In this document: piece after piece, positions 51,647 to 63,865 of the stretch
How positions within the stretch are numbered: position 1 is the first letter of the stretch
Layout: each line of letters starts with the position of its first letter
Origin: Klebsormidium nitens
Taxonomy: Eukaryota; Plantae; Klebsormidiophyceae
Assembly: GCA_000708835.1 (NCBI GenBank)
Contig: DF237088.1
Coordinates: forward strand, 1-64,000
Reading direction: 5' to 3'
Length of the DNA: 64,000 bases
Program-made: the position numbers and the translations under genes
The notes under the pieces: generated by a model
What the model was told of the DNA's origin: nothing
What the model saw: only the letters and a program-made list of their open reading frames with translations
Databases searched by the model: none

Positions 51647-54600
51647 TCATGAAGCCGTTTTAGGAGCCGATCGACATTCTCTTCGATGGCCGGTCGCCCA
51701 GTGCTTCGTCTGCATCAGACGTCATTGCGATTTCAAAGAAACTTTCCAGATCTATAAGGACTGGATGAAAGCTTTGATGCATGCAGTCCTGCTCTCGGAT
51801 GTGTCAAGTATGATAGATTTTCAACGGACGAGCTGTCTCTGCGGTCACAACATGGAGCATCTGAGAGTCGTTTATTCGGGGACAACTATGAGGAGGTGAG
51901 AAGCACACTACCTGACAAGATTTGGAGCAGTAACGCGCCACACCGCATCTGCCACACCTTTGGAAAGTCCCCTTGCTCTCTTCGACGAGCTTGTCTTCGC
52001 ACCCCTGTAGATGCAAATGACGAACATCAAGATTCGAGTAGACTCTGTTTGGAAGCCGCAGTCCTTACAGACAAGAAGGTGAAGGCCGCCAAGGCCGCCA
52101 GTAATGCAAAGCTAGCACGATATCGATTTCAGCTTACATAACACCCGACGTCAACTGCTTTAGGTGGTCCCTCAACTGCGTAAGGTGAAGCTGCAATAGC
52201 CTATTCCAGCAAGTTACCCGTTCCTTTCTCGTTACCCGTTCCTTTCTCAAAGAGCTTCCTACGTCGCCTTTCCGTGATGCTACTGGGGGATGCGTCAGCT
52301 TGCTTTCGAAGTCCGTTAGCGTCAGGTAAGCTTTCGGGATAGGCTGGAAAGGCTCGGGTCTCGTCGCCGTCATAATCTACAAACGTCGAAGGAATACGAC
52401 GGGTAGAGCCAGTCGAAAGACAAACAGAAAAAGAGCTCACCGGATTGCTGCAGGCCTTGAGTCCAAACTCGAGCGCCTGTACCTCCCAGAGACGCCGCAC
52501 CACTCTCTGCGTCGCTGGTACCCACTGCTGCTCCGCCGCCTTGTCGGGCAGCGCAGCCTGGAAAGTGAGAACGTCCCGGAGCACCTTGGCACATAGGGCG
52601 GGGCCGTTGGCCCGGGCGCTTCGGAGCAGGACCTGCCTGCGGAGCTTTGGCTCGGTGGCTGGGTCATCGAGCGTTTCTAGAAACGCGTCCAAGATCGAGG
52701 AAACGTTGCACATCGCTTCATTGAGGATTTCCTCCCCGGTTGTGCCGATGTAGTCCCTCAGCGGAGGTCCGTCGAAGGGCCCGAAAGCTCCGAAAGCTGC
52801 TATCATGGTGTCGCGCACTGAGTCGAGTGTCTGGATGACTATCTCGAGCTTTGGGAGGAGCGCTTTTTTGATGGGAGCAGCGAGGCAGCAGGCTTGCAAG
52901 ACGGACAAGACGCATCGAGGGATGCCGAAGAGAATGGAGTAGCTCTGCAGGACGTGTTGAAGCTTGTCAAGACCTAGGCTTAGAAGGCCCCGCTCGTAGA
53001 AAATTCGCCCGGCATTCTGCATACAGACCGCACCAATTCGTGGGGATTCCAAGGCGGGGTCCAGCGGCTCGCTTCCGGGGTGCCACAGACACTCGCTCGT
53101 GATCGTCACGCTGGAAGATCTGAAATAGCACGCAGAGCTTTTCAAGCTGGTGAGGTTGGCCCAGGCGATCGACGCCGTGTCGGAGAACGGGTCCAGCTTG
53201 ATGGCAGAGACGGCCAGGTCTACGTAGTGCATCTGCATCCGCTCTGGCAGCTTCCTCCGGTCCCAAATCTCCGTTTCCTTGAGCAAAGCTAAGACGGAGT
53301 TGTAGACATAGGACTCGAGCTTCTCGTCCAGCCCCACGAAGCCTGCGTTTCGGTCCAGAAGTTTCACAGCAGAGGTCCACTCCAAAAGTCCCACGGATGT
53401 TGTAAGGAACGGTCCTTGCAGAGATGGCTTCTTCCTTTTGTCTACCGTCAGGAACAAACTCCCAAGAACGTCGAGCGCACGTCGGACGATCGCGGATCTT
53501 TCGGCCGAAAGTTTCTTCTTCGCTCCAGCTTCCAAGCTGACTTTGGGGACAGTCAGGCCCAATGCTCTCAGAGTGACACTTGCTGCGCCTTCTGTGATCA
53601 ACGAAGCTGCTTGCTCGGCCGTGCACTTTCTGAGCTGCTTTGCCGCAAAATCTAGCAGACGTCCCGCTTGCTCCGCTCCTGAACGCGAAAGTTTCACGAA
53701 AATCTCACGAAGAAGCGCGGAGTCTGCTTGATGCGTTGGATCGGGGGTCTTACTCAAGTCCAGTTTCTCTGAGTCTCTTTGGAAGTACTCCGCCGCTTCC
53801 TTGAAGAGCTCCCTTTGATTCTTCATGACAGTCATGTGGCCTGGAGAGAACTCAGCAGTGTCGAAGTAGCGGAGAATCTTTGGTGGTCAGGATCTCGGAA
53901 AACACCTGGGAATTTCTCTCAATGCCTGGAAACGCTCTCAGGTCGTGCGTCACGATGGCTGCCAGCAGCCGAGCGTAAGTGTCTAAGAGCAACTCGAAGA
54001 ACTTAGCACGTCGACACTGAAGAGCTGGTTCTTCTGTTACTCTGTCACAGGTTTGGTCCATGAAGAGCAGGAAGTCTGAGGCCCACTCCCCAACATCGAC
54101 CGCCAAGTCCCTCAGGTTCTGCACGGAGTGCTCGGCATAGGCCCTGAAAATAAGGGCAGCTTGCTGTATGCTGAAGAAGAGAAAATATATGTTGTCCCCC
54201 CGCCAGTGGCACCACGCAGTATCCCATGTTCGATAAGAGATTGCAATGAACTGACGCAGGAGCCCGGCTTGCCGCGCAGCCTCGCGGAACTCTGCGCTGC
54301 TCTCGAGAAGACTGGCTGTGATGTTTGTGTAGTAGGTTTCCGGATGCTCCTTATCGAGGTCTAAATTCTGCGCTGCGCCTGTCTTTGGCTCTGACAGAAT
54401 CCTCTGCCCGAAGTGGAAGAGACGGGATGCGATGTCACAGCGCCCGATCTGCGAAACAGTTTGACTTGATGTTCGCAAGAATAGATGTCCTTTTCACGTT
54501 GCAACAAATGAGAGGTATCACCTGTGGAACTATTGTAGGAGATGCAAAAGCTTTGCAATCTCGATCTGTACGGTGATACCAGAGCTTTTCTACGTGACAG

Positions 54601-55797
54601 TTGAGCGAGTTGCAGAAAAACTACACACATATCGAACGGTTGCAACTCAAAGAGCTGCATAATCCGCATGAGAAGAAATTGTGGGGTCCTTCGAATCAGC
54701 TTGTCTTTTACGAATGTAGAAGTCTTTTTCCTACCTACAACGTTGTTTTTCAGATTGGTGCTTCAATATCGCCAAGAAGAATCTGAACTTTCAACCAGAA
54801 CGTCGATGTCCATAGACCGCTAAAAAGGCGATAACGTTTGGGAGAGAGTACGGAGGAGTTTACCTGCAGGGCAAACTCCGGGACGGTGCTCAGCTTTGCG
54901 ATGCATCTCACGCAAGAATCTGGCAGTTCGCCACTTGACGAGACGTTATCCATCTCATCTAGTAAGGCGGACAAAAGATTCTCATCTCTCAACATTTTCT
55001 CTACCTGCAAACATATAGAGACGGCTTTGTATAGAAAACCTGCGAAGAATTGTGAGAAAGAGGATCCACATACAGCTTTTGGAGAGTCTGAATTCAAGAT
55101 GAAATCAGAACTGATGGACTCTGACAGAAGCATCAAGCTGCCAAATTAGCTTTCAAAGGCACTAAAGTACGAAGACGTTAGACAGGGGAGCTCAGAGACA
55201 CAGATTGTCTTGGTGCTGTTGCAAAACCCGTCCGAGTAAGGTCTTGGGATCACGTTCAGAGGTCAAAATGTTAGTAGAAACGACTGGAAAATGAAGGGCA
55301 AAGGCAACCTCCTACTTACCGTCTTGAAGCTTTTGGACGGCTTCACTCTCATCTGGTTCTGCTCTTCTTTGGATATGGCGTCCTCAGAGGCACCAACTTT
55401 GCTGACCATGCGCACGAAGTCAGGCACAGCTTCGCAAGCCTTCTTTGCGCAGATCTTTGCAGGGTGCCTCAGGCCCTTCTTCAGATCCTGCAGCGAACAA
55501 AATTGCGGCATGCATTTCTGTGTAATATGCACATGAGCAGAAGTACGGCTTGCTTATCAGTTAAAGAAAGCCATCGAATCCAAATCTCAAATACGCCTGC
55601 CCCTTGAGCTGGCATGTCTGGCTACCGTATGTTGCATGAAAAGGCGTGAAGTTGACACGAGCTCGAGCGATATTGCTGAGAGGAGTTGACCCAAAATCTT
55701 GTTCAAACTCTCTTCTTTGCTCTGGGTTGAAGCTTTCAAGAGTCCGAACATTTTCTGTTCCGTTCTTCGAGCTTCTTACCTTTTCTTTCTTCGACAT
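51647..55797 (-). CDS. Large helical protein with C-terminal MYND zinc finger, about 875 aa, containing one frame break (possible pseudogene)
   Basis: Exons 55797-55597 (GC donor, tentative), 55487-55320, 55004-54864, 54403-52441, 52004-51912, 51709-51647. MYND motif CSNPGC...CGRCGVARYCSKSCQTKHWATGHRREC assembled across the last three exons. The big exon is 1963 nt (3n+1) and changes frame near 53880. Confidence 0.75.
52213..52248. repeat. 18-bp perfect tandem duplication in a MYND-gene intron
   Basis: gttacccgttcctttctc at 52213-52230 and 52231-52248. Confidence 0.9.
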
Positions 55798-57177
55798 CTT
55801 TGGCCAATCAGCAGGTTACTAGGTGGATCACCTTCTTTTCTTGTTCTGGTGCCGTGCAGCAGAACTTGACCGTTGAAAGGAGCATGCATCGCCTTCCTTC
55901 TGCCTCTGCTGTCGTTCCGCTTGTTTACAGTCGCCTTGAATAGTCCGCCAACATCTACTGTAGACTACTGGTTCCCACATCCTGAAGTCAGCAATTGAGA
56001 GCCGAGCGGTGTTGACAATGCCGTTGGACGGGGCCACTTGACGAGTCTGCGAAGCCTCTCGCACTGGCAGTGGATGTGCATGCGGGTTAAGTGAATCATC
56101 GAGAAACGCCTTGCACGTGAAAATCGCCTTATCGCTTCAGTCAGACGTTACTAGAAATCTTAACCTGGTGTCTTCGAACTGAAGCCGGGCCGGCGGCGGC
56201 AGGTAAGACAATACATCCTCATGAGCTTAAAAGACTCTTGATTTGGATCTTTGGTGGGTCTTCGGGACTGGTGAGCCTTCGGCTGCAGCGACGTTCGAGC
56301 GTGCCAGCCTTTCTCAATTGGGGGGTCCTGAGAAAACTCATTCACTTCTGCTTCTTGTCATTGCATGGCTAAGGCCAGTGCTACTGTTTATTATGTTGCT
56401 AAGGCTTAGTACTCCAAGCCTCTGACTTATCCATTGCATCGTGAGTTTTTCAGTCCGGTCGACGTACGACCGCTAGTTGAGCGAAATCCAATATGTTGTC
56501 GGCCCATGTTTCCACGTGTGTGAAACCTTAACCTTTTCAGATTGTAAAGCTTGATGTTTCGCTTGAGAACCCGAATCAGGTACTATGTAGTTTCACGCCG
56601 TTGTCTGTGAACGAATAAACATCCGACTGCGAATCAGTCAAGTCAAGTTGATTTGAAGTAGACGCACCATGATGCTCGAGCTGCATGGGCTGGCAGCACC
56701 TCTTGCCAATCAAGGCAAGCTGTCAGTAAAGTCGCTGCCCCTAAAACTATCAGCTCCGCGTAATGAAAGATGTATTGAGCCAATCAGTCACGAAGACTTG
56801 CTAAGTAAGCCTGTGACCTTTGGCTTTGGGGACAAGTCGGCTTTGTTCAACCATATTTGCAACATGAGTGACTAAGATCAGGCCATGTGCCATCATGCTC
56901 ATTTAAGACGCGGGTCAGATATGATTTTGCTCAAGTCATTAAAATCATTGTTCTCGACTCCTCTACCTCTTCGGCACCCATAAAAGGGCATTGAAATTTG
57001 TAAAGATCCCACCAGAAGATTTAAGTCCAATTAAGAAGCGAATCAATCAACAAGTCACTCTAGCCCGCTGGCTGAGAATGACACTCGAAGCACGGCTGTC
57101 ACTGCTCGTCGTTTGCAACAAGTTCACCAGTCACTACCCGCGTGCGCTGTCCCACTTCCCAGGCTAAAAGATCTCTT

Positions 57178-60100
57178 TTAACCGGCATCCGTCCGCTGAG
57201 GGCACCGTTTCCGATTGTGTCCCGGCTGGCCGCATATGCTGCACCTCTGAATGATCAGCTCCTTCGGACGCTCCGGACACTCGCGCACACGGTGGTCGGG
57301 GAGTCCGCAGATCTCACACAGCGTCCGGCCCGGGAACGCGGCACTGTTCGGACACTGCCCCGCTTCGTGCCCGTACTCCCCGCACTTTTTGCAGCGGAAC
57401 GGTATGCGCACCATGCCGCGCTTGGGACAAGAGCCGCCCCGCCCATGGCCCGGTTGCCCGCAGATCGGGCAGGGCTTGTTCGTGCTCTTCACAAAGCCTC
57501 GCTCCGGGCAGAACCGCGAATTGTGGCCTTCCAGGCCGCAGTAGCTGCAGTGCATCACCCGCTCTGAAAAGGAGAAGGGAGAAGTTCGGGGGAGTGGCAA
57601 TTGAAAAGAGTGGCCTTCGTCAGAACGGGATTCGGGTTCCGAAACGGAGTCATGATGAGCATTGCGCAGAGCAAAGAGGCCTCAAGCTTCATAGGGGTGT
57701 CAAAGGAGGAGAATGCAAGGAAGAGGGGGAATGAAGCGCAACTTAGAAAAAGCATCAGCTATAAATTCTTTTTTTCGGGAAGTCGAAGTAACACCTCGAT
57801 AGTAGACAATCGCGGTATCTAGGATCCAGATTGAAACATATACAAATGGGCTTTGTATCATCCGAAAAGCTTCTTTCCGGACAATCCTTTCGTTTCATCG
57901 TGTCCTTCTCTTGAGGAGGGGCGTCATCATGATGTAAGCAGAATCGGAAACGGCAAAACTTCCCAGATGAAAGAGACCGCTGGCTCTCTCTGTGATAACG
58001 GCTTGCCAGCTCTGGAGAAGTCTCCTCCAATCGTTCTTGCAATCTTACAAATCTTGCCGTTCAAAAGTAAAGAAGCTCTCCAATCTGAATACGCTTCTGT
58101 CGTCTGGACTTCGAGACAAGATCAGCATCTCCGCCAAACTTATCGAGCTAAGTTCCCGGTCCTCACTTCTCGGTGCCCAAAACTTCTTCGCAAGCTCCGA
58201 CCAGCGCTCCCTTGCGCCCGGCTCCTCGAAGAACTCCCGCCGTAGATCGGACAGCTTTTTCCTGCGTCCGAAAACATCCGTTAATAAGAGGAAGAGCCAC
58301 GACTGGCATGACTCACATCAATCCATGTCATTCCCGCACAGCAGAAAATCAACATAGGACCACCCCTAACTCCTACAAAAGTCGCGAATGAAATCAGCCG
58401 ACATTTCTATCAATCGGGGAAAAAGGTTAGTGTCGGCTTCTCGATGCTCTCACGGGAAGGCCGACGCGAAGAGTATGGACGCAACTCAATATCCAGCGGG
58501 TCTTCGGTCTTTGTTCATACGTCACTATATGTGACCAAGGCCCATCTGGGAACTCGTACAGCTTCAAGTGAAGAGCACATAGCAGCCCTTCAGTTTGCAA
58601 AGCCCTATTTCTTCTTAACGTGTATCTTGCGACATTGAAACGCACGGCTCACCTATGCGACGAAGTTAGCGGAGAGCGAGGCTTGCCCTGTACAGAAGAA
58701 GGAAATATATCATTTCTTGGTAAAAGGAAAACTCTCCGCGCAATTCAATGACTTCCGCTGGCAATGTTCTGATCGACTCCTAGAAGTTCAGCTCTGAAAA
58801 GATGAACAGCGAAGCGGAGAATTGCAGACACAAGAGGAGTTGGAGAAGCGAAGGGTTCAAGTTGAGTGGGCACACATCACGGGATGACTGTGCTAAGTTC
58901 CTGAAAACAACAATACGAGATGGCTACGCTAAGCTTCTGTAAACAACCGACAAAGACTACCTCTCAAAGAATTCAAGTGAACAAGTGAACATTGTCAAAT
59001 CCTCCAATAAGCACACACGCCGAGCGACTGTCTTCTTGATTTGTACCTGCATGGCCCGGCTGATCTTGGCACGGTGCTCCGGCGACTTGGGCCTTCCGAC
59101 GAGCCAGTGCGTCTTGGCAGGCGTGCCATTGGCTGCCGCGCGCCCGTTTGCACCGGACGAGGCCGACTGCATCCGCCTGCAATGAGCAACGCACACTGAG
59201 GCTGCAGCTACTCAACACGGAGGTTGACACGAATAGACAAAGGAAAGACGTGGAGTAACGTACCTTGCAGAGTTCTAAATGTCGTGCCCCTAGAACAGTG
59301 GCTGACTGACCTGTGGACGGTTCTGCTAAGGGTTTGATGGTTTGGATCCGCGTCGAGCAATCTTCTCAAAAAAACCGGTGTCCCCACGTCAATGGGATTC
59401 ATTAATGCCACGATCGAGGACAGGCGCGTCCAATGCTGAAGTAGAAGGCTGGATGACACCACGACTTGATACAGGTGCAAACAAGCGTCCTAACAGAACT
59501 GGAGCTCCCCTCTTAGACTCCCCCTCTTTCAATCAGAAAACCTTGACTCGCAATCGTGACGGCATTTTCAGGAGGCACTGCAAAGCGGCACAAACGGAAT
59601 ATATCTCGCTGATTCGGTGCTGATGTCAAACGGTAGATTCTTGAAAATCACAGCTATGCGGCAGACCCACTGATGACCACACCACGACCACCACCGGATG
59701 ATCAAAGAAAAGGAGTTCGTAAGCACTGCACCTTTCGTTCTTAATTATCCGGTATGCTTCCAGCAACGAAGGGCCCTCCTCCTCTAGTGGCTCGTTCACT
59801 GCGCTGGTGCTTTGTGCAGGGACTTTCGAAGGACTGCAAACGAGAAGCTAGGTTAGGGGTTCACCACGCTGGTACTCTGTGCAGGAACTCTTAAAGAATT
59901 GAAAACGCGAGGCTAGCCAAGGGGACAAATCGACTCACCACTTACTTCATCGTCCAAGAACACTCGAAGTGCAATGGTCGACCTGTTGTCTTCGAACTGA
60001 CAAAAAATCTAAGGTTTGCTGACCACGAATGTGCGATTTGGAATCGTTGAGATTGAATGAGGAAGAGAAAGGTTTCCTTCACCCTTTACGATAGCGGGGG

Positions 60101-61754
60101 GAGCTGTATCATGGACTGCCCCTAAGAAACGTGCGAGGCAACAAACGACCGGGCATAGAGCGTGAACTGATAGACATCATAAGAGCTACATGACCAAAAA
60201 CTCCCGCTGTCACTCACGCAGGTGTCTTCGGAGGCTGCGATCTCTTTGTTTGCCGATATGTTGTGCCACTTCCATGGCAGTGCGTACACGTCTTGTACCC
60301 CTGAGAGCGAAAGAAGCCACAGCACCATCATGAGCTCATCGAAGGGCAAATCAGGTTGATATCGACTAGACCTTCTCCCGTAAGCAAGACATCGCCTCGT
60401 CCTCTGGCTTACAAGTACCTGGCTCGAAAGAGTTGCCAATAGAAATTTGCCACATAGAACCAGATTGCACATATTTCAAAAATCTTTTGTATCTTTGGAC
60501 ACTTTTCCAATGCACTATCCGTCACGCATACTCAGGGGAAAAGTTGCTTACCACGCCTTTGCACGCTGGGCAAGCGCCTGGCGGCCAACCCGAGTCGCAC
60601 ACGTCACACACGAGAGTAGCAGTCCCATGGCATACCGGACACGGCTCCACCACCCATTCCGGGCCAGCCGCAAGAGTTGCGCTCGTGTCCGCCATCTCAG
60701 ATTCATCCGCCGTCTCATACCCTGCTAATAGTCCCGACAAAGGACTCCTCCGCAACCTGCCACCGCTCTTGCCGAATTGACCCCTTGGAAGCGGCCTAGC
60801 TATCGTACTCAAAGGACTGCTGCGCACTGGCATCTCTGCGTCCTCATTATCTATGCTACCCGCGATCACGTCCGGCTGGGGGTTTCTGGTGAAGCGCAGC
60901 TTTTGACGCCCCTTCCCCGGCTCGCTTTTACCAAAGATGGCATCAAGGGAAGTCCCAGGCGCACGGCTCTCAAGAGCAGAGCTCCTGCTGCTCGCAATGC
61001 CCTGTGTGTGCTCTGCCTCCCTAGTTGACCGCACGTCCCTCCATCTAGTTCCCTTGGTGGCAGTGTTGATCAATCTCGTCCCCCGTTCAAGCAGAGTGTG
61101 CCCCTCTGAAACCCCAGAGCCTTTTACCTCAAAATTATGGACATCATTTAAGTCCACTGTCGCCATTGGTGATTCATCTTTGTCAGCATCTAATATTGAG
61201 CTAGCCGCTCCATAAGAGCGATCGCTCCATGTGCGTCCCGAGCCTTCCTCACTTGCCCCTTTCTTTCCCGACCGGCCAACTTCCAATTTCTCCGCTGAGG
61301 GCTTCCGACCAGCCAATAGTCTTTCTTCAGGTTCTAGACCAGGAAATAGCTTTTCAACCTCAACAGATGGAGGCTTCTGCTTTGACCCGCCTGCCACCAC
61401 AACTCTCTCAGGTGTTGCCTTGGCATGGCAGGCGATTGATTGAAGCTGCTGATTCTTGGCGCATGTCAGCTGCCTCCGACCTCTGAGCTGCTTTCTGATC
61501 GTTTCTTGGCTCCTTAGTCTTGGCGTACAACCCTCTCTTCGAAAGGAAAGCAAATCTTGAGAGATATGTACAGCTACAGGAGTAGAGCATGAATAAGGAA
61601 ACCGCAGCTGCTCGAAGTGTGCAAAAGCGGAGCACGTGCTGGACCGATGCCTCCCAAAAGCACTACTTTGATGCACGCGACTTCTGGCGCCAGTCTCCAA
61701 CCACGCCCCTGTGGTGGTGCAAGCAGGGACACAAGCTGGACTCCTCAAAGCCAT
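57178..61754 (-). CDS. Putative plastid nucleic-acid-binding protein: DnaJ-type Zn finger + 2 NUMOD3-like motifs + 5 CCHC zinc knuckles, 6 exons, 643 aa
   Basis: Exons 61754-60552, 60300-60218, 59176-59047, 58687-58653, 58261-58167, 57563-57178 join with matching phases 0,2,0,2,1 (1932 nt). Ser/Arg/Ala-rich N-terminus; CPVCHGT...CDVC...CPACKGVGYKTCTHCHGSG; GRPKSPEHRAKISRAM and GKPRSPLTSSHRKKLS; five Cx2Cx4Hx4-5C knuckles. Confidence 0.8.
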
Positions 61755-62428
61755 GGCCCTCCTGAAATGCCAGCGAGCGCCTCACGTTCATGTAGAATCA
61801 AGTAACGCATCATGCCCCAGCATCATGCACAGCTCGTCCTTGTCCCCTGCAACGCTAGCACGTACCTAGTCTCTTAGCTGTGATTCTGAACTTGAGTCTC
61901 TGAGAACAAAGAAAAGATGTCCAGCTGATGGAGATAGCACAGGCTGAGAAAGGGCGAAATGGCATCTTTCTTGCTATCGAGGTTCTTCGTTCCGTGTGAA
62001 TCCTTTCAACATGAGGCACACGTGGCCGTGGGCTGAGCTGGTTGACCAATTGGAAGGGAGCAGCCGTGTATACGTGGCCTTCTATGTCACCAACTTGGAC
62101 GCATTTACACTTTTGAGTTCCTGATGATGACACCCAGCACTGCAGCAGAGCCAGCCTAGCTGAGCTACTGAGCCAACCTTCCTACAGTAGTATAAATTAT
62201 AATTCGAGGTCAGCTCAATTTTCAAAGCTCCAAGAGGTGCACTTGCCCACCATGTGTGTTGTCGCGCTGCCCTCTCCTCACTTGCATGCTGGAACTTGAG
62301 GATGTCTTTAGTATTATTAGTCGCTAGGGAGTAGTGCAGGTGCCAAGGTCCTCTGTGCTCTTTCATTCTGGATGGATTGTTCGAATTGCTTAGTGTAGTT
62401 GCGCGTACATAACAGTGGGCTTCTTGAA

Positions 62429-63865
62429 ATGGCTCTCTATAAGCACAGAAAAGAGGGCCTTGGAAGGTGAGTTGTTCCGCATTTTCTCAATGGTGACATC
62501 GTCAAACTATGATTTGTAGATCTTAAGTTGGAGAGAACTTGCATGTTCAAAAGTACATCCACTGCCACCCTAATTAGCGCTTAGGGACAAACACGTTGGG
62601 CCCCTTAAAGCTGAATGTTCAGACTTGGCGCCCCTGGGCTGGGAAGTAGCGCCAATCAGTCTGCTGTCTAGGGCGCTTTCTCATTCAATTCCAGCATTGA
62701 ATGCATCTGCAAGCGTCCGCTTTTGATTGTTATATCTTTCTGCATTGCATTTCATCTGTAAAACTCTCACTATTTGATCAAGGGGAATTTGCAAGCCACT
62801 TTGTCTTCAATTTCTGGCTGCTTCTGCAGGGGAACGGATAGCGAGCCGCTGTTTGGACCCTCCCCTTCTGAAACCGATCTGTTCCAGAAGCAGTTTGAGG
62901 ATCTGCTTCTGCAGCAAGAGGACGCCGAAGGACAGAACACTCAAAGACCATTTCTGTATCCTGACATACTTGCATTCTTCTTTGGGGTCGTCGTTCAAGT
63001 GTAGCACAAGTTACATTTTCCATGGTATTTTCTTAGCACTGATGCCTTTCTGTTTGTTCACATGTGCTGGATGATTCCTAGTGTCATCTTGAGTTCCAAT
63101 TGCTAATCGCCAAGCTTCCTTGACCAAAAAGCTTCCACAGCAATGAGCTGTTGGACATCACATCAACCATACAAGAGGGCGTCAGTGCTATCGCAGACGT
63201 AAGTCTCACCTCGAAGTTGGAAAGTATTGTCTGCAAACTGCTTGCCAGGTTTGTACGACGACGGAGTAAAATTGTGGGCAGTGGACATCCAATTTGGTGG
63301 CAGACAACTGTAATTGATGTCTAGTAGTGAATCCTTGCACAGTTTCGGTGAAACTTCCACTGATGCTTTTGCCGGGAGACACTACTCGGGAGCCAGCAAG
63401 TGTCGCCAGGAACTTGATGTGAAAACATGTTGGTAGACTACTAACTCTTATAGCGCTTGTGCGCTCCAGGACTCTTTCACGCGGTGTTTCAAGGAGAATC
63501 ATCCCGACCCATGGAACTGGAATATCTACTTGTTCCCAGTATGGTGCATGGGCGTCCTGCTGCGATACCTCATTCTCTTCCCCTTAAGGTAAGCTCGAGA
63601 CCATCTAGATGCCTCCTGAGTCCGAGTACTCATTCGTCAAGTATGCTGCACTTACACAGACTCCGCATTCCCTTGACATTGTTCTCCAATCTTACACTGT
63701 GACAGAAAGAAGGTCAATTTTTGGAATCGATTGCCCTCAAAACAGCAGCTTGCTGCCTGCAGGTTGATCCTCCTGGTCCTGGGCTGGGTTCTCTTCTTCC
63801 TCATCTTTCTGCCCGTGCACTTCTTCATCCCGGACAGCAAGTCGAAAATGAGAAAGAAGTTTGAG
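62429..63865 (+). CDS. GPAT9: Glycerol-3-phosphate acyltransferase 9, first 5 exons, continues beyond the window
   Basis: Exons 62429-62466, 62830-62955, 63141-63198, 63470-63588, 63763-63865. LLDITSTIQEGVSAIADDSFTRCFKENHPDPWNWNIYLFPVWCMGVLLRYLILFPLR matches the GPAT9 N-terminal signature. Confidence 0.93.

Follow-up and report, generated by a model that had tools for sequence, protein, structure and literature searches.

What does the chain of coding pieces on the minus strand between positions 61754 and 57178 of Klebsormidium nitens contig DF237088.1 encode, and do all of its pieces belong to one gene? The window, i.e., the whole stretch of DNA analysed, is 64,000 nucleotides (nt) long, and all coordinates given here are positions in it. 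The original prediction was a single gene of 643 amino acids (aa), joining a DnaJ-type zinc finger, NUMOD3-like motifs and five CCHC knuckles behind a transit-peptide-like leader. The present analysis indicates that the locus is almost certainly a single nuclear gene, of seven exons, and that its product belongs to a streptophyte family of proteins. The best explanation of the data as a whole, a seven-exon family gene coding for a putative organellar nucleic-acid-binding factor, is considered rather probable. The exons are as follows:

61754-60552, minus strand: exon 1, 1203 nt, 401 codons; start ATG at 61754, leader, long disordered region and first three CxxC pairs
60300-60218, minus strand: exon 2, 83 nt, AG/GT borders, entered in phase 0; fourth CxxCxGxG motif and basic tail; kept in both related contigs described below
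59833-59732, minus strand: exon 3, 102 nt, AG/GT borders; acidic linker with EEGPSLLEAYRIIKNER; present in the public protein P0002
59176-59047, minus strand: exon 4, 130 nt; canonical NUMOD3 unit GRPKSPEHRAKISRAMQ
58687-58653, minus strand: exon 5, 35 nt; start of a second, degenerate NUMOD3-like unit (GKPRSPLTSSH)
58261-58167, minus strand: exon 6, 95 nt; helical segment with the family motif FFxxPxxRxxxS
57563-57178, minus strand: exon 7, 386 nt including the stop; five CCHC zinc knuckles

Exon 1 is an open frame ending at a GT donor at 60551, every intron runs from GT to AG, and all internal exon borders are AG/GT. The seven-exon chain from ATG 61754 has 677 codons without an internal stop. 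A word-index search with exon 1 retrieved the public protein P0002 (hypothetical protein KFL_001390120 [Klebsormidium nitens], 481 aa), which is an exact suffix of this chain starting at Met197 (ATG at 61166). Splice joining was done in silico only to test this suffix identity and to count the leader residues; the searches used separate exons, or P0002 in place of the spliced product. The six exons predicted originally stood with their coordinates, phases and borders, and they sum to 1932 nt (643 codons and the stop). The predicted length did not stand, as the 102-nt exon 59833-59732, which encodes the 34 residues of P0002 between exons 2 and 4, had been overlooked inside the supposed intron 60217-59177; the product is thus 677 aa long. 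The frame of the 643-aa chain had stayed closed because the length of the overlooked exon is a multiple of three.

Two related genomic contigs support the exon chain, namely L001, from a close relative (Logan assembly of SRR23617307), and L002, from a more distant one (contig Ga0590114_0004424 of the Joint Genome Institute (JGI) metagenome 3300060284). When P0002 was compared with them by tblastn, both contigs yielded all seven exons in unchanged order, at 55-97% identity for L001 and 40-72% for L002. Protein identity is 74 and 49% for exon 3, 97 and 67% for exon 6, and 88 and 72% for exon 7 in L001 and L002, respectively; exon 5 is 93% conserved in L001, and exon 1 is 61% identical across its full length to protein P0001 of a related genome. 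In DNA comparisons, the alignment to L001 takes in 2015 of 2034 exon bases, as against 278 of 2543 intron bases. Such conservation of the exons, as compared to the diverged introns, rules out both a chance chain of open reading frames (ORFs) and a division of the locus into two genes.

The 5' end of the gene extends beyond the public model by the following segment:

61167-61754, minus strand: 5' extension, codons 1-196; absent from KFL_001390120, of targeting-peptide-like composition

An in-frame stop lies 10 codons 5' of ATG 61754, and the only in-frame ATGs are those at codons 1, 197, 308 and 354. The ratio of nonsynonymous to synonymous substitution rates (dN/dS) against L001 is 1.03 for codons 1-100, 0.38 for codons 101-196 and 0.27 for codons 197-401, and the indels are in frame. 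Codons 101-196 are under purifying selection, and the start must therefore lie upstream of codon 101. Judged from these sequence comparisons, ATG 61754 is the sole start candidate, provided that no 5' exon has escaped notice, and is likely the true N-terminus; the public model KFL_001390120 looks 5'-truncated. The first 60 aa of the leader contain 15 Ser and Thr, 8 Ala, 6 Arg and Lys, and 2 Asp and Glu residues. Its many Ser/Thr/Ala/Arg and few acidic residues agree, as regards composition, with the transit-peptide-like leader proposed earlier.

The first recognizable module of the protein is interrupted by intron 1:

60641-60552 (exon 1) and 60300-60265 (exon 2), minus strand: cysteine-rich zinc finger, four CxxC pairs split by intron 1

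The motifs of the finger are CPVCHGTA, CDVCDSGW, CPACKGVG and CTHCHGSG, and its eight Cys residues are invariant across 17 family members. An AlphaFold2 model derived from the family alignment is confident in places only, with a predicted local distance difference test score (pLDDT) above 90 at residues 170-225 of P0002 (the finger) and of about 80 at the helices 299-353. With the predicted model as the query of an exhaustive aligner, the closest structure to the predicted finger is Arabidopsis BSD2 (6ekb_A; Z 5.9, root-mean-square deviation 2.3 Å, 50 residues aligned), which is the only one among 48,161 chains with Z ≥5. Foldseek also ranks 6ekb at the top, although E is weak (0.07), owing to the use of the whole 481-aa model as the query. 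When the family profile was compared with PDB sequences, it matched the EMB2737 DnaJ-like finger (8xku_R, 3.2e-5) and E. coli DnaJ (1exk, 0.02); a Pfam search of exon 1 alone gave no match. These profile and structure matches, together with the eight invariant Cys, bear out the assignment of the finger to the BSD2/DnaJ cysteine-rich type. Like BSD2 (6ekb) and the DnaJ cysteine-rich domain (1exk), the Klebsormidium finger is predicted to form a two-zinc hairpin of four CxxC(xGxG) motifs; unlike them, the protein has neither a J domain nor other sequence similarity to BSD2, and only two of its four motifs are canonical CxxCxGxG. BSD2, LQY1, CYO1 and pTAC5 are plastid proteins with a finger of the BSD2 type.

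Between the finger and the knuckles, one unit is, by sequence comparison, a real NUMOD3 repeat, and the next one or two are degenerate. A phmmer search of 1.84 billion representatives matched P0041, P0064, P0086, P0114 and P0125 through residues 281-343 (E 1e-8 to 1e-5). All of these pass Pfam NUMOD3 with 35-113 bits. One of them, P0086, combines NUMOD3 with a GIY-YIG nuclease domain and shares 58% identity with the exon 4 unit over 33 aa. A hidden Markov model (HMM) of the unit, made from 26 genuine NUMOD3 repeats, scores 28.4 bits at residues 294-311, as compared to 5.2 bits for the best of 380 shuffles; the exon 5 unit alone is not significant with this model. Pfam NUMOD3 (PF07460) gives 16.7 bits (E 0.0071) for P0002 and 14.8 bits for exon 4 alone. 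Of the NUMOD3-like motifs predicted originally, one unit is thus borne out by its matches to genuine NUMOD3 and GIY-YIG proteins, and the Pfam score falls short.

The unit GRPKSPEHRAKISRAMQG fits the repeat consensus of the NUMOD3 of GIY-YIG/HNH homing endonucleases (PF07460, e.g. P0086). Unlike these enzymes, the Klebsormidium protein has no nuclease domain and, in place of a long array, one clear unit with one or two degenerate ones, and it is encoded by a nuclear gene with introns. In I-TevI, NUMOD3 binds in the minor groove of DNA. The helical middle of the family is best read, from the sequence signal, as eroded NUMOD3 repeats, since the signal is clear in Klebsormidium, weak in Chlorokybus (9.0 bits with the unit HMM) and not significant in land plants, where hhalign puts the NUMOD3 unit on the segment 'SPxPEVGxKISRSLK' with a P value of 0.004 and a probability of 8%. 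All matches of the profile search of PDB sequences were to knuckles or DnaJ-like fingers, and nothing resembling I-TevI was matched by the NUMOD3 region. Structural matches of the helical region 295-380 were all unrelated helical proteins with Z <4 and were judged meaningless. The plant NUMOD3 gene ClNUM1 (PMC11201747), for which zinc or CCHC is not mentioned, was taken as different.

The C-terminal module encoded by exon 7 passes the Pfam cut-off for zf-CCHC (PF00098) with 39.3 bits (5.8e-10; cut-off 20.8), and the five knuckles predicted originally are all present as C-x2-C-x4-H-x4-C, the second being spaced H-x5-C. CCHC knuckles bind single-stranded nucleic acid. Family members differ widely in their number of knuckles, of which models of Gypsophila and Spinacia have up to about nine, and the L002 orthologue has extra CCHC knuckles past the fifth (L002:13821-14162).

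The order of these modules is a property of the family. Among the 1.84 billion representatives, phmmer aligned the protein from the finger through the knuckles with members from Melastoma, Acorus, Picea, Rhododendron, Gypsophila, Salix, the liverwort Calypogeia and the basal streptophyte Chlorokybus; in eight land-plant representatives, this span is covered by best stretches such as 167-477. A word search seeded by the Salix member gave 297 matches, nearly all of them angiosperm 'zinc knuckle' or uncharacterised proteins. A word-index search with residues 150-355 of P0002 found only P0002 itself and P0001, the land-plant family being reached by exhaustive HMMER, and family membership rests on forward searches from the Klebsormidium protein. 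BLASTP of P0002 against the Arabidopsis protein P0296 (AED92814.1, NP_001078608.1; chromosome 5, several isoforms) gave a single colinear alignment of residues 170-477 to 85-379 (E 9e-19). We take P0296 to be AT5G20220, with which the chromosome 5 accession series and the isoforms are consistent. In the 17-sequence alignment A1, 29 columns are invariant, including the eight finger Cys, P336, R339 and S343, and the first two knuckles; F333, P336, R339 and S343 of the FFxxPxxRxxxS motif are invariant or nearly so. The Klebsormidium protein is like the AT5G20220-like family in having a leader, a four-CxxC finger, a helical repeat region with FFxxPxxRxxxS and then at least four CCHC knuckles. It differs in having about 350 residues before the finger, as compared to about 100 in land plants, in its five knuckles, and in retaining a canonical NUMOD3 unit, the signal of which has ceased to be significant in land plants. 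The 90% cluster in which the Arabidopsis protein falls (cluster of P0287, Arabidopsis relatives) also contains longer models, of 759-762 aa, that come from A. lyrata, A. suecica and A. halleri and in some cases bear the name 'nuclear pore complex protein NUP1'.

The three-part combination, which had been thought unusual, is in fact the standard architecture of a streptophyte-wide family in public databases, Arabidopsis included. The Klebsormidium protein belongs to an already known but uncharacterised family, and its architecture is not new. Prior description of the architecture, which the original prediction had named as telling against it, holds for the databases, where it is widespread; the literature search found no paper describing it, i.e., none linking NUMOD3, a BSD2-type finger and CCHC knuckles in plants, and no functional study of the AT5G20220-like family. 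AT5G20220 has been reported as a CCHC protein of unknown function with single homologues in rice and maize (10.1101/2021.02.05.430006, preprint), and a conifer target-enrichment probe set pairs it with a spruce gene. The family spans Chlorokybus to angiosperms under a database label of merely 'zinc knuckle'. The algal sequence makes two further modules readable, the BSD2-type finger and the NUMOD3-derived helical region, which give concrete hypotheses for the Arabidopsis or Marchantia orthologues. As a gain in annotation, the public Klebsormidium model is corrected at its 5' end.

NUMOD3 and CCHC modules also occur together outside this family. The chlorophyte proteins P0038 (whose cluster holds Picocystis salinarum A0A6U9QXC0) and P0056 contain DUF1995, NUMOD3 unit(s) and, directly after these, 2-3 CCHC knuckles. 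They resemble the Klebsormidium protein in having the NUMOD3 unit(s) directly before the knuckles; unlike it, they have DUF1995 as the partner in place of the BSD2-type finger, and P0056 has its domains in another order. Since chlorophytes join NUMOD3-CCHC to DUF1995 instead of the finger, the comparison of sequences suggests that NUMOD3-CCHC is a mobile cassette. A more speculative scenario, which we regard as doubtful, places the domestication of a homing-endonuclease NUMOD3 unit early in the history of green plants. The unit would have become part of a fixed NUMOD3-CCHC cassette acting on organellar nucleic acids, which was later joined to a BSD2-type finger in streptophytes and to DUF1995 in chlorophytes. 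If so, streptophytes would possess a conserved factor by which a surface for protein assembly or holdase activity is coupled to plastid DNA or RNA, and traces of the origin of the cassette would be least eroded in Klebsormidium.

An organellar nucleic-acid-binding mechanism can be read from the modules tentatively, as a possible rather than a probable account. The leader would carry the protein into an organelle, the plastid being favoured over another organelle because of the plastid co-expression hint discussed below. The NUMOD3 helices may hold a nucleic acid duplex at its minor groove and the CCHC knuckles single-stranded nucleic acid, while the BSD2-like finger would offer a zinc-stabilised surface for protein contact or holdase activity, less likely a redox enzyme. 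A partner protein would in this way be tethered to the DNA or RNA of the organelle.

Several results weigh against this account. For the finger, the Pfam families BSD2_CRD (PF25436) and DnaJ_CXXCXGXG (PF00684) gave no match for P0002, and a few family members have weak Pfam matches (Anti-TRAP 3.5e-4, BSD2_CRD 0.023, DnaJ_CXXCXGXG 0.075). The Pfam NUMOD3 score of P0002 is below the gathering threshold of 20.4 bits, and the land-plant orthologues have no significant NUMOD3 signal (unit HMM ≤1.1 bits), for which reason DNA binding by the NUMOD3 region may not be a conserved property. CCHC proteins are mostly nucleo-cytoplasmic, and a dN/dS of about 1 over codons 1-100 fits a transit peptide but also weak or no coding constraint. 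Finally, the identity of P0296 with AT5G20220 is presumptive.

The location of the protein is the point on which two of the rival explanations turn. The product could be a nucleo-cytoplasmic protein that binds RNA as CNBP/AIR2/ZCCHC proteins do, and its N-terminal extension would then be a disordered region and not a targeting peptide. The strongest database and PDB matches are indeed the CCHC knuckles of Gag nucleocapsids, TUT4/7 and AIR2, some orthologues have been labelled automatically as, e.g., 'DNA-binding protein HEXBP' or 'ZCCHC9', and the dN/dS of codons 1-100 points the same way; the matches to Gag, TUT4/7 and AIR2, however, span the knuckles only. A BSD2-type finger is typical of plant plastid proteins, and the leader is rich in Ser/Thr/Arg with few acidic residues. 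AT5G20220, moreover, is reported to show co-expression with plastid genes and to have a predicted organellar presequence (10.1101/2021.02.05.430006), and a nucleo-cytoplasmic protein is on balance unlikely. The same preprint reports a predicted mitochondrial location, or presequence, for AT5G20220 and the single rice and maize homologues, which would fit a mitochondrial or dual-targeted nucleic-acid-binding factor in place of a plastid one; the co-expressors of AT5G20220 are, however, almost only plastid genes, including LHCB7, ABC1K5 and HCF145 (10.1101/2021.02.05.430006, preprint), and we consider a mitochondrial factor distinctly unlikely.

The finger itself could, by analogy, be a redox enzyme, i.e., a disulfide isomerase or reductase like LQY1 or CYO1, that would couple thiol chemistry to nucleic-acid binding, in line with a suggestion of the original prediction. 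The CxxC-rich fold class is shared, and LQY1 and CYO1 have disulfide isomerase activity in vitro; the nearest structural match is nevertheless BSD2, a zinc-dependent assembly chaperone, and all eight Cys are invariant, as expected of two structural zinc sites, which makes an enzyme quite improbable. Scarcely credible is a break within 60217-59177, an alternative raised in the original prediction itself, that would leave two genes, one for the zinc finger and another for NUMOD3 and CCHC. The interval is long (1041 nt), and no positive support for a break was found. The conserved in-phase exon 59833-59732 lies inside it and the public model spans it; the finger and knuckles are on one polypeptide, in colinear order, in orthologues from Chlorokybus to Arabidopsis. 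The one-gene reading of the original prediction is upheld by this exon and by the colinear exons of L001 and L002. The preferred explanation of the locus thus remains that of one family gene whose product is a candidate organellar nucleic-acid-binding factor.

An Rfam search of 56500-62500 gave no match. The downstream neighbour on the same strand (52201-55136, minus) seems to be a multi-exon gene of its own, comprising a 544-aa ORF at 52201-53835 and more ORF pieces that reach to about 55136.

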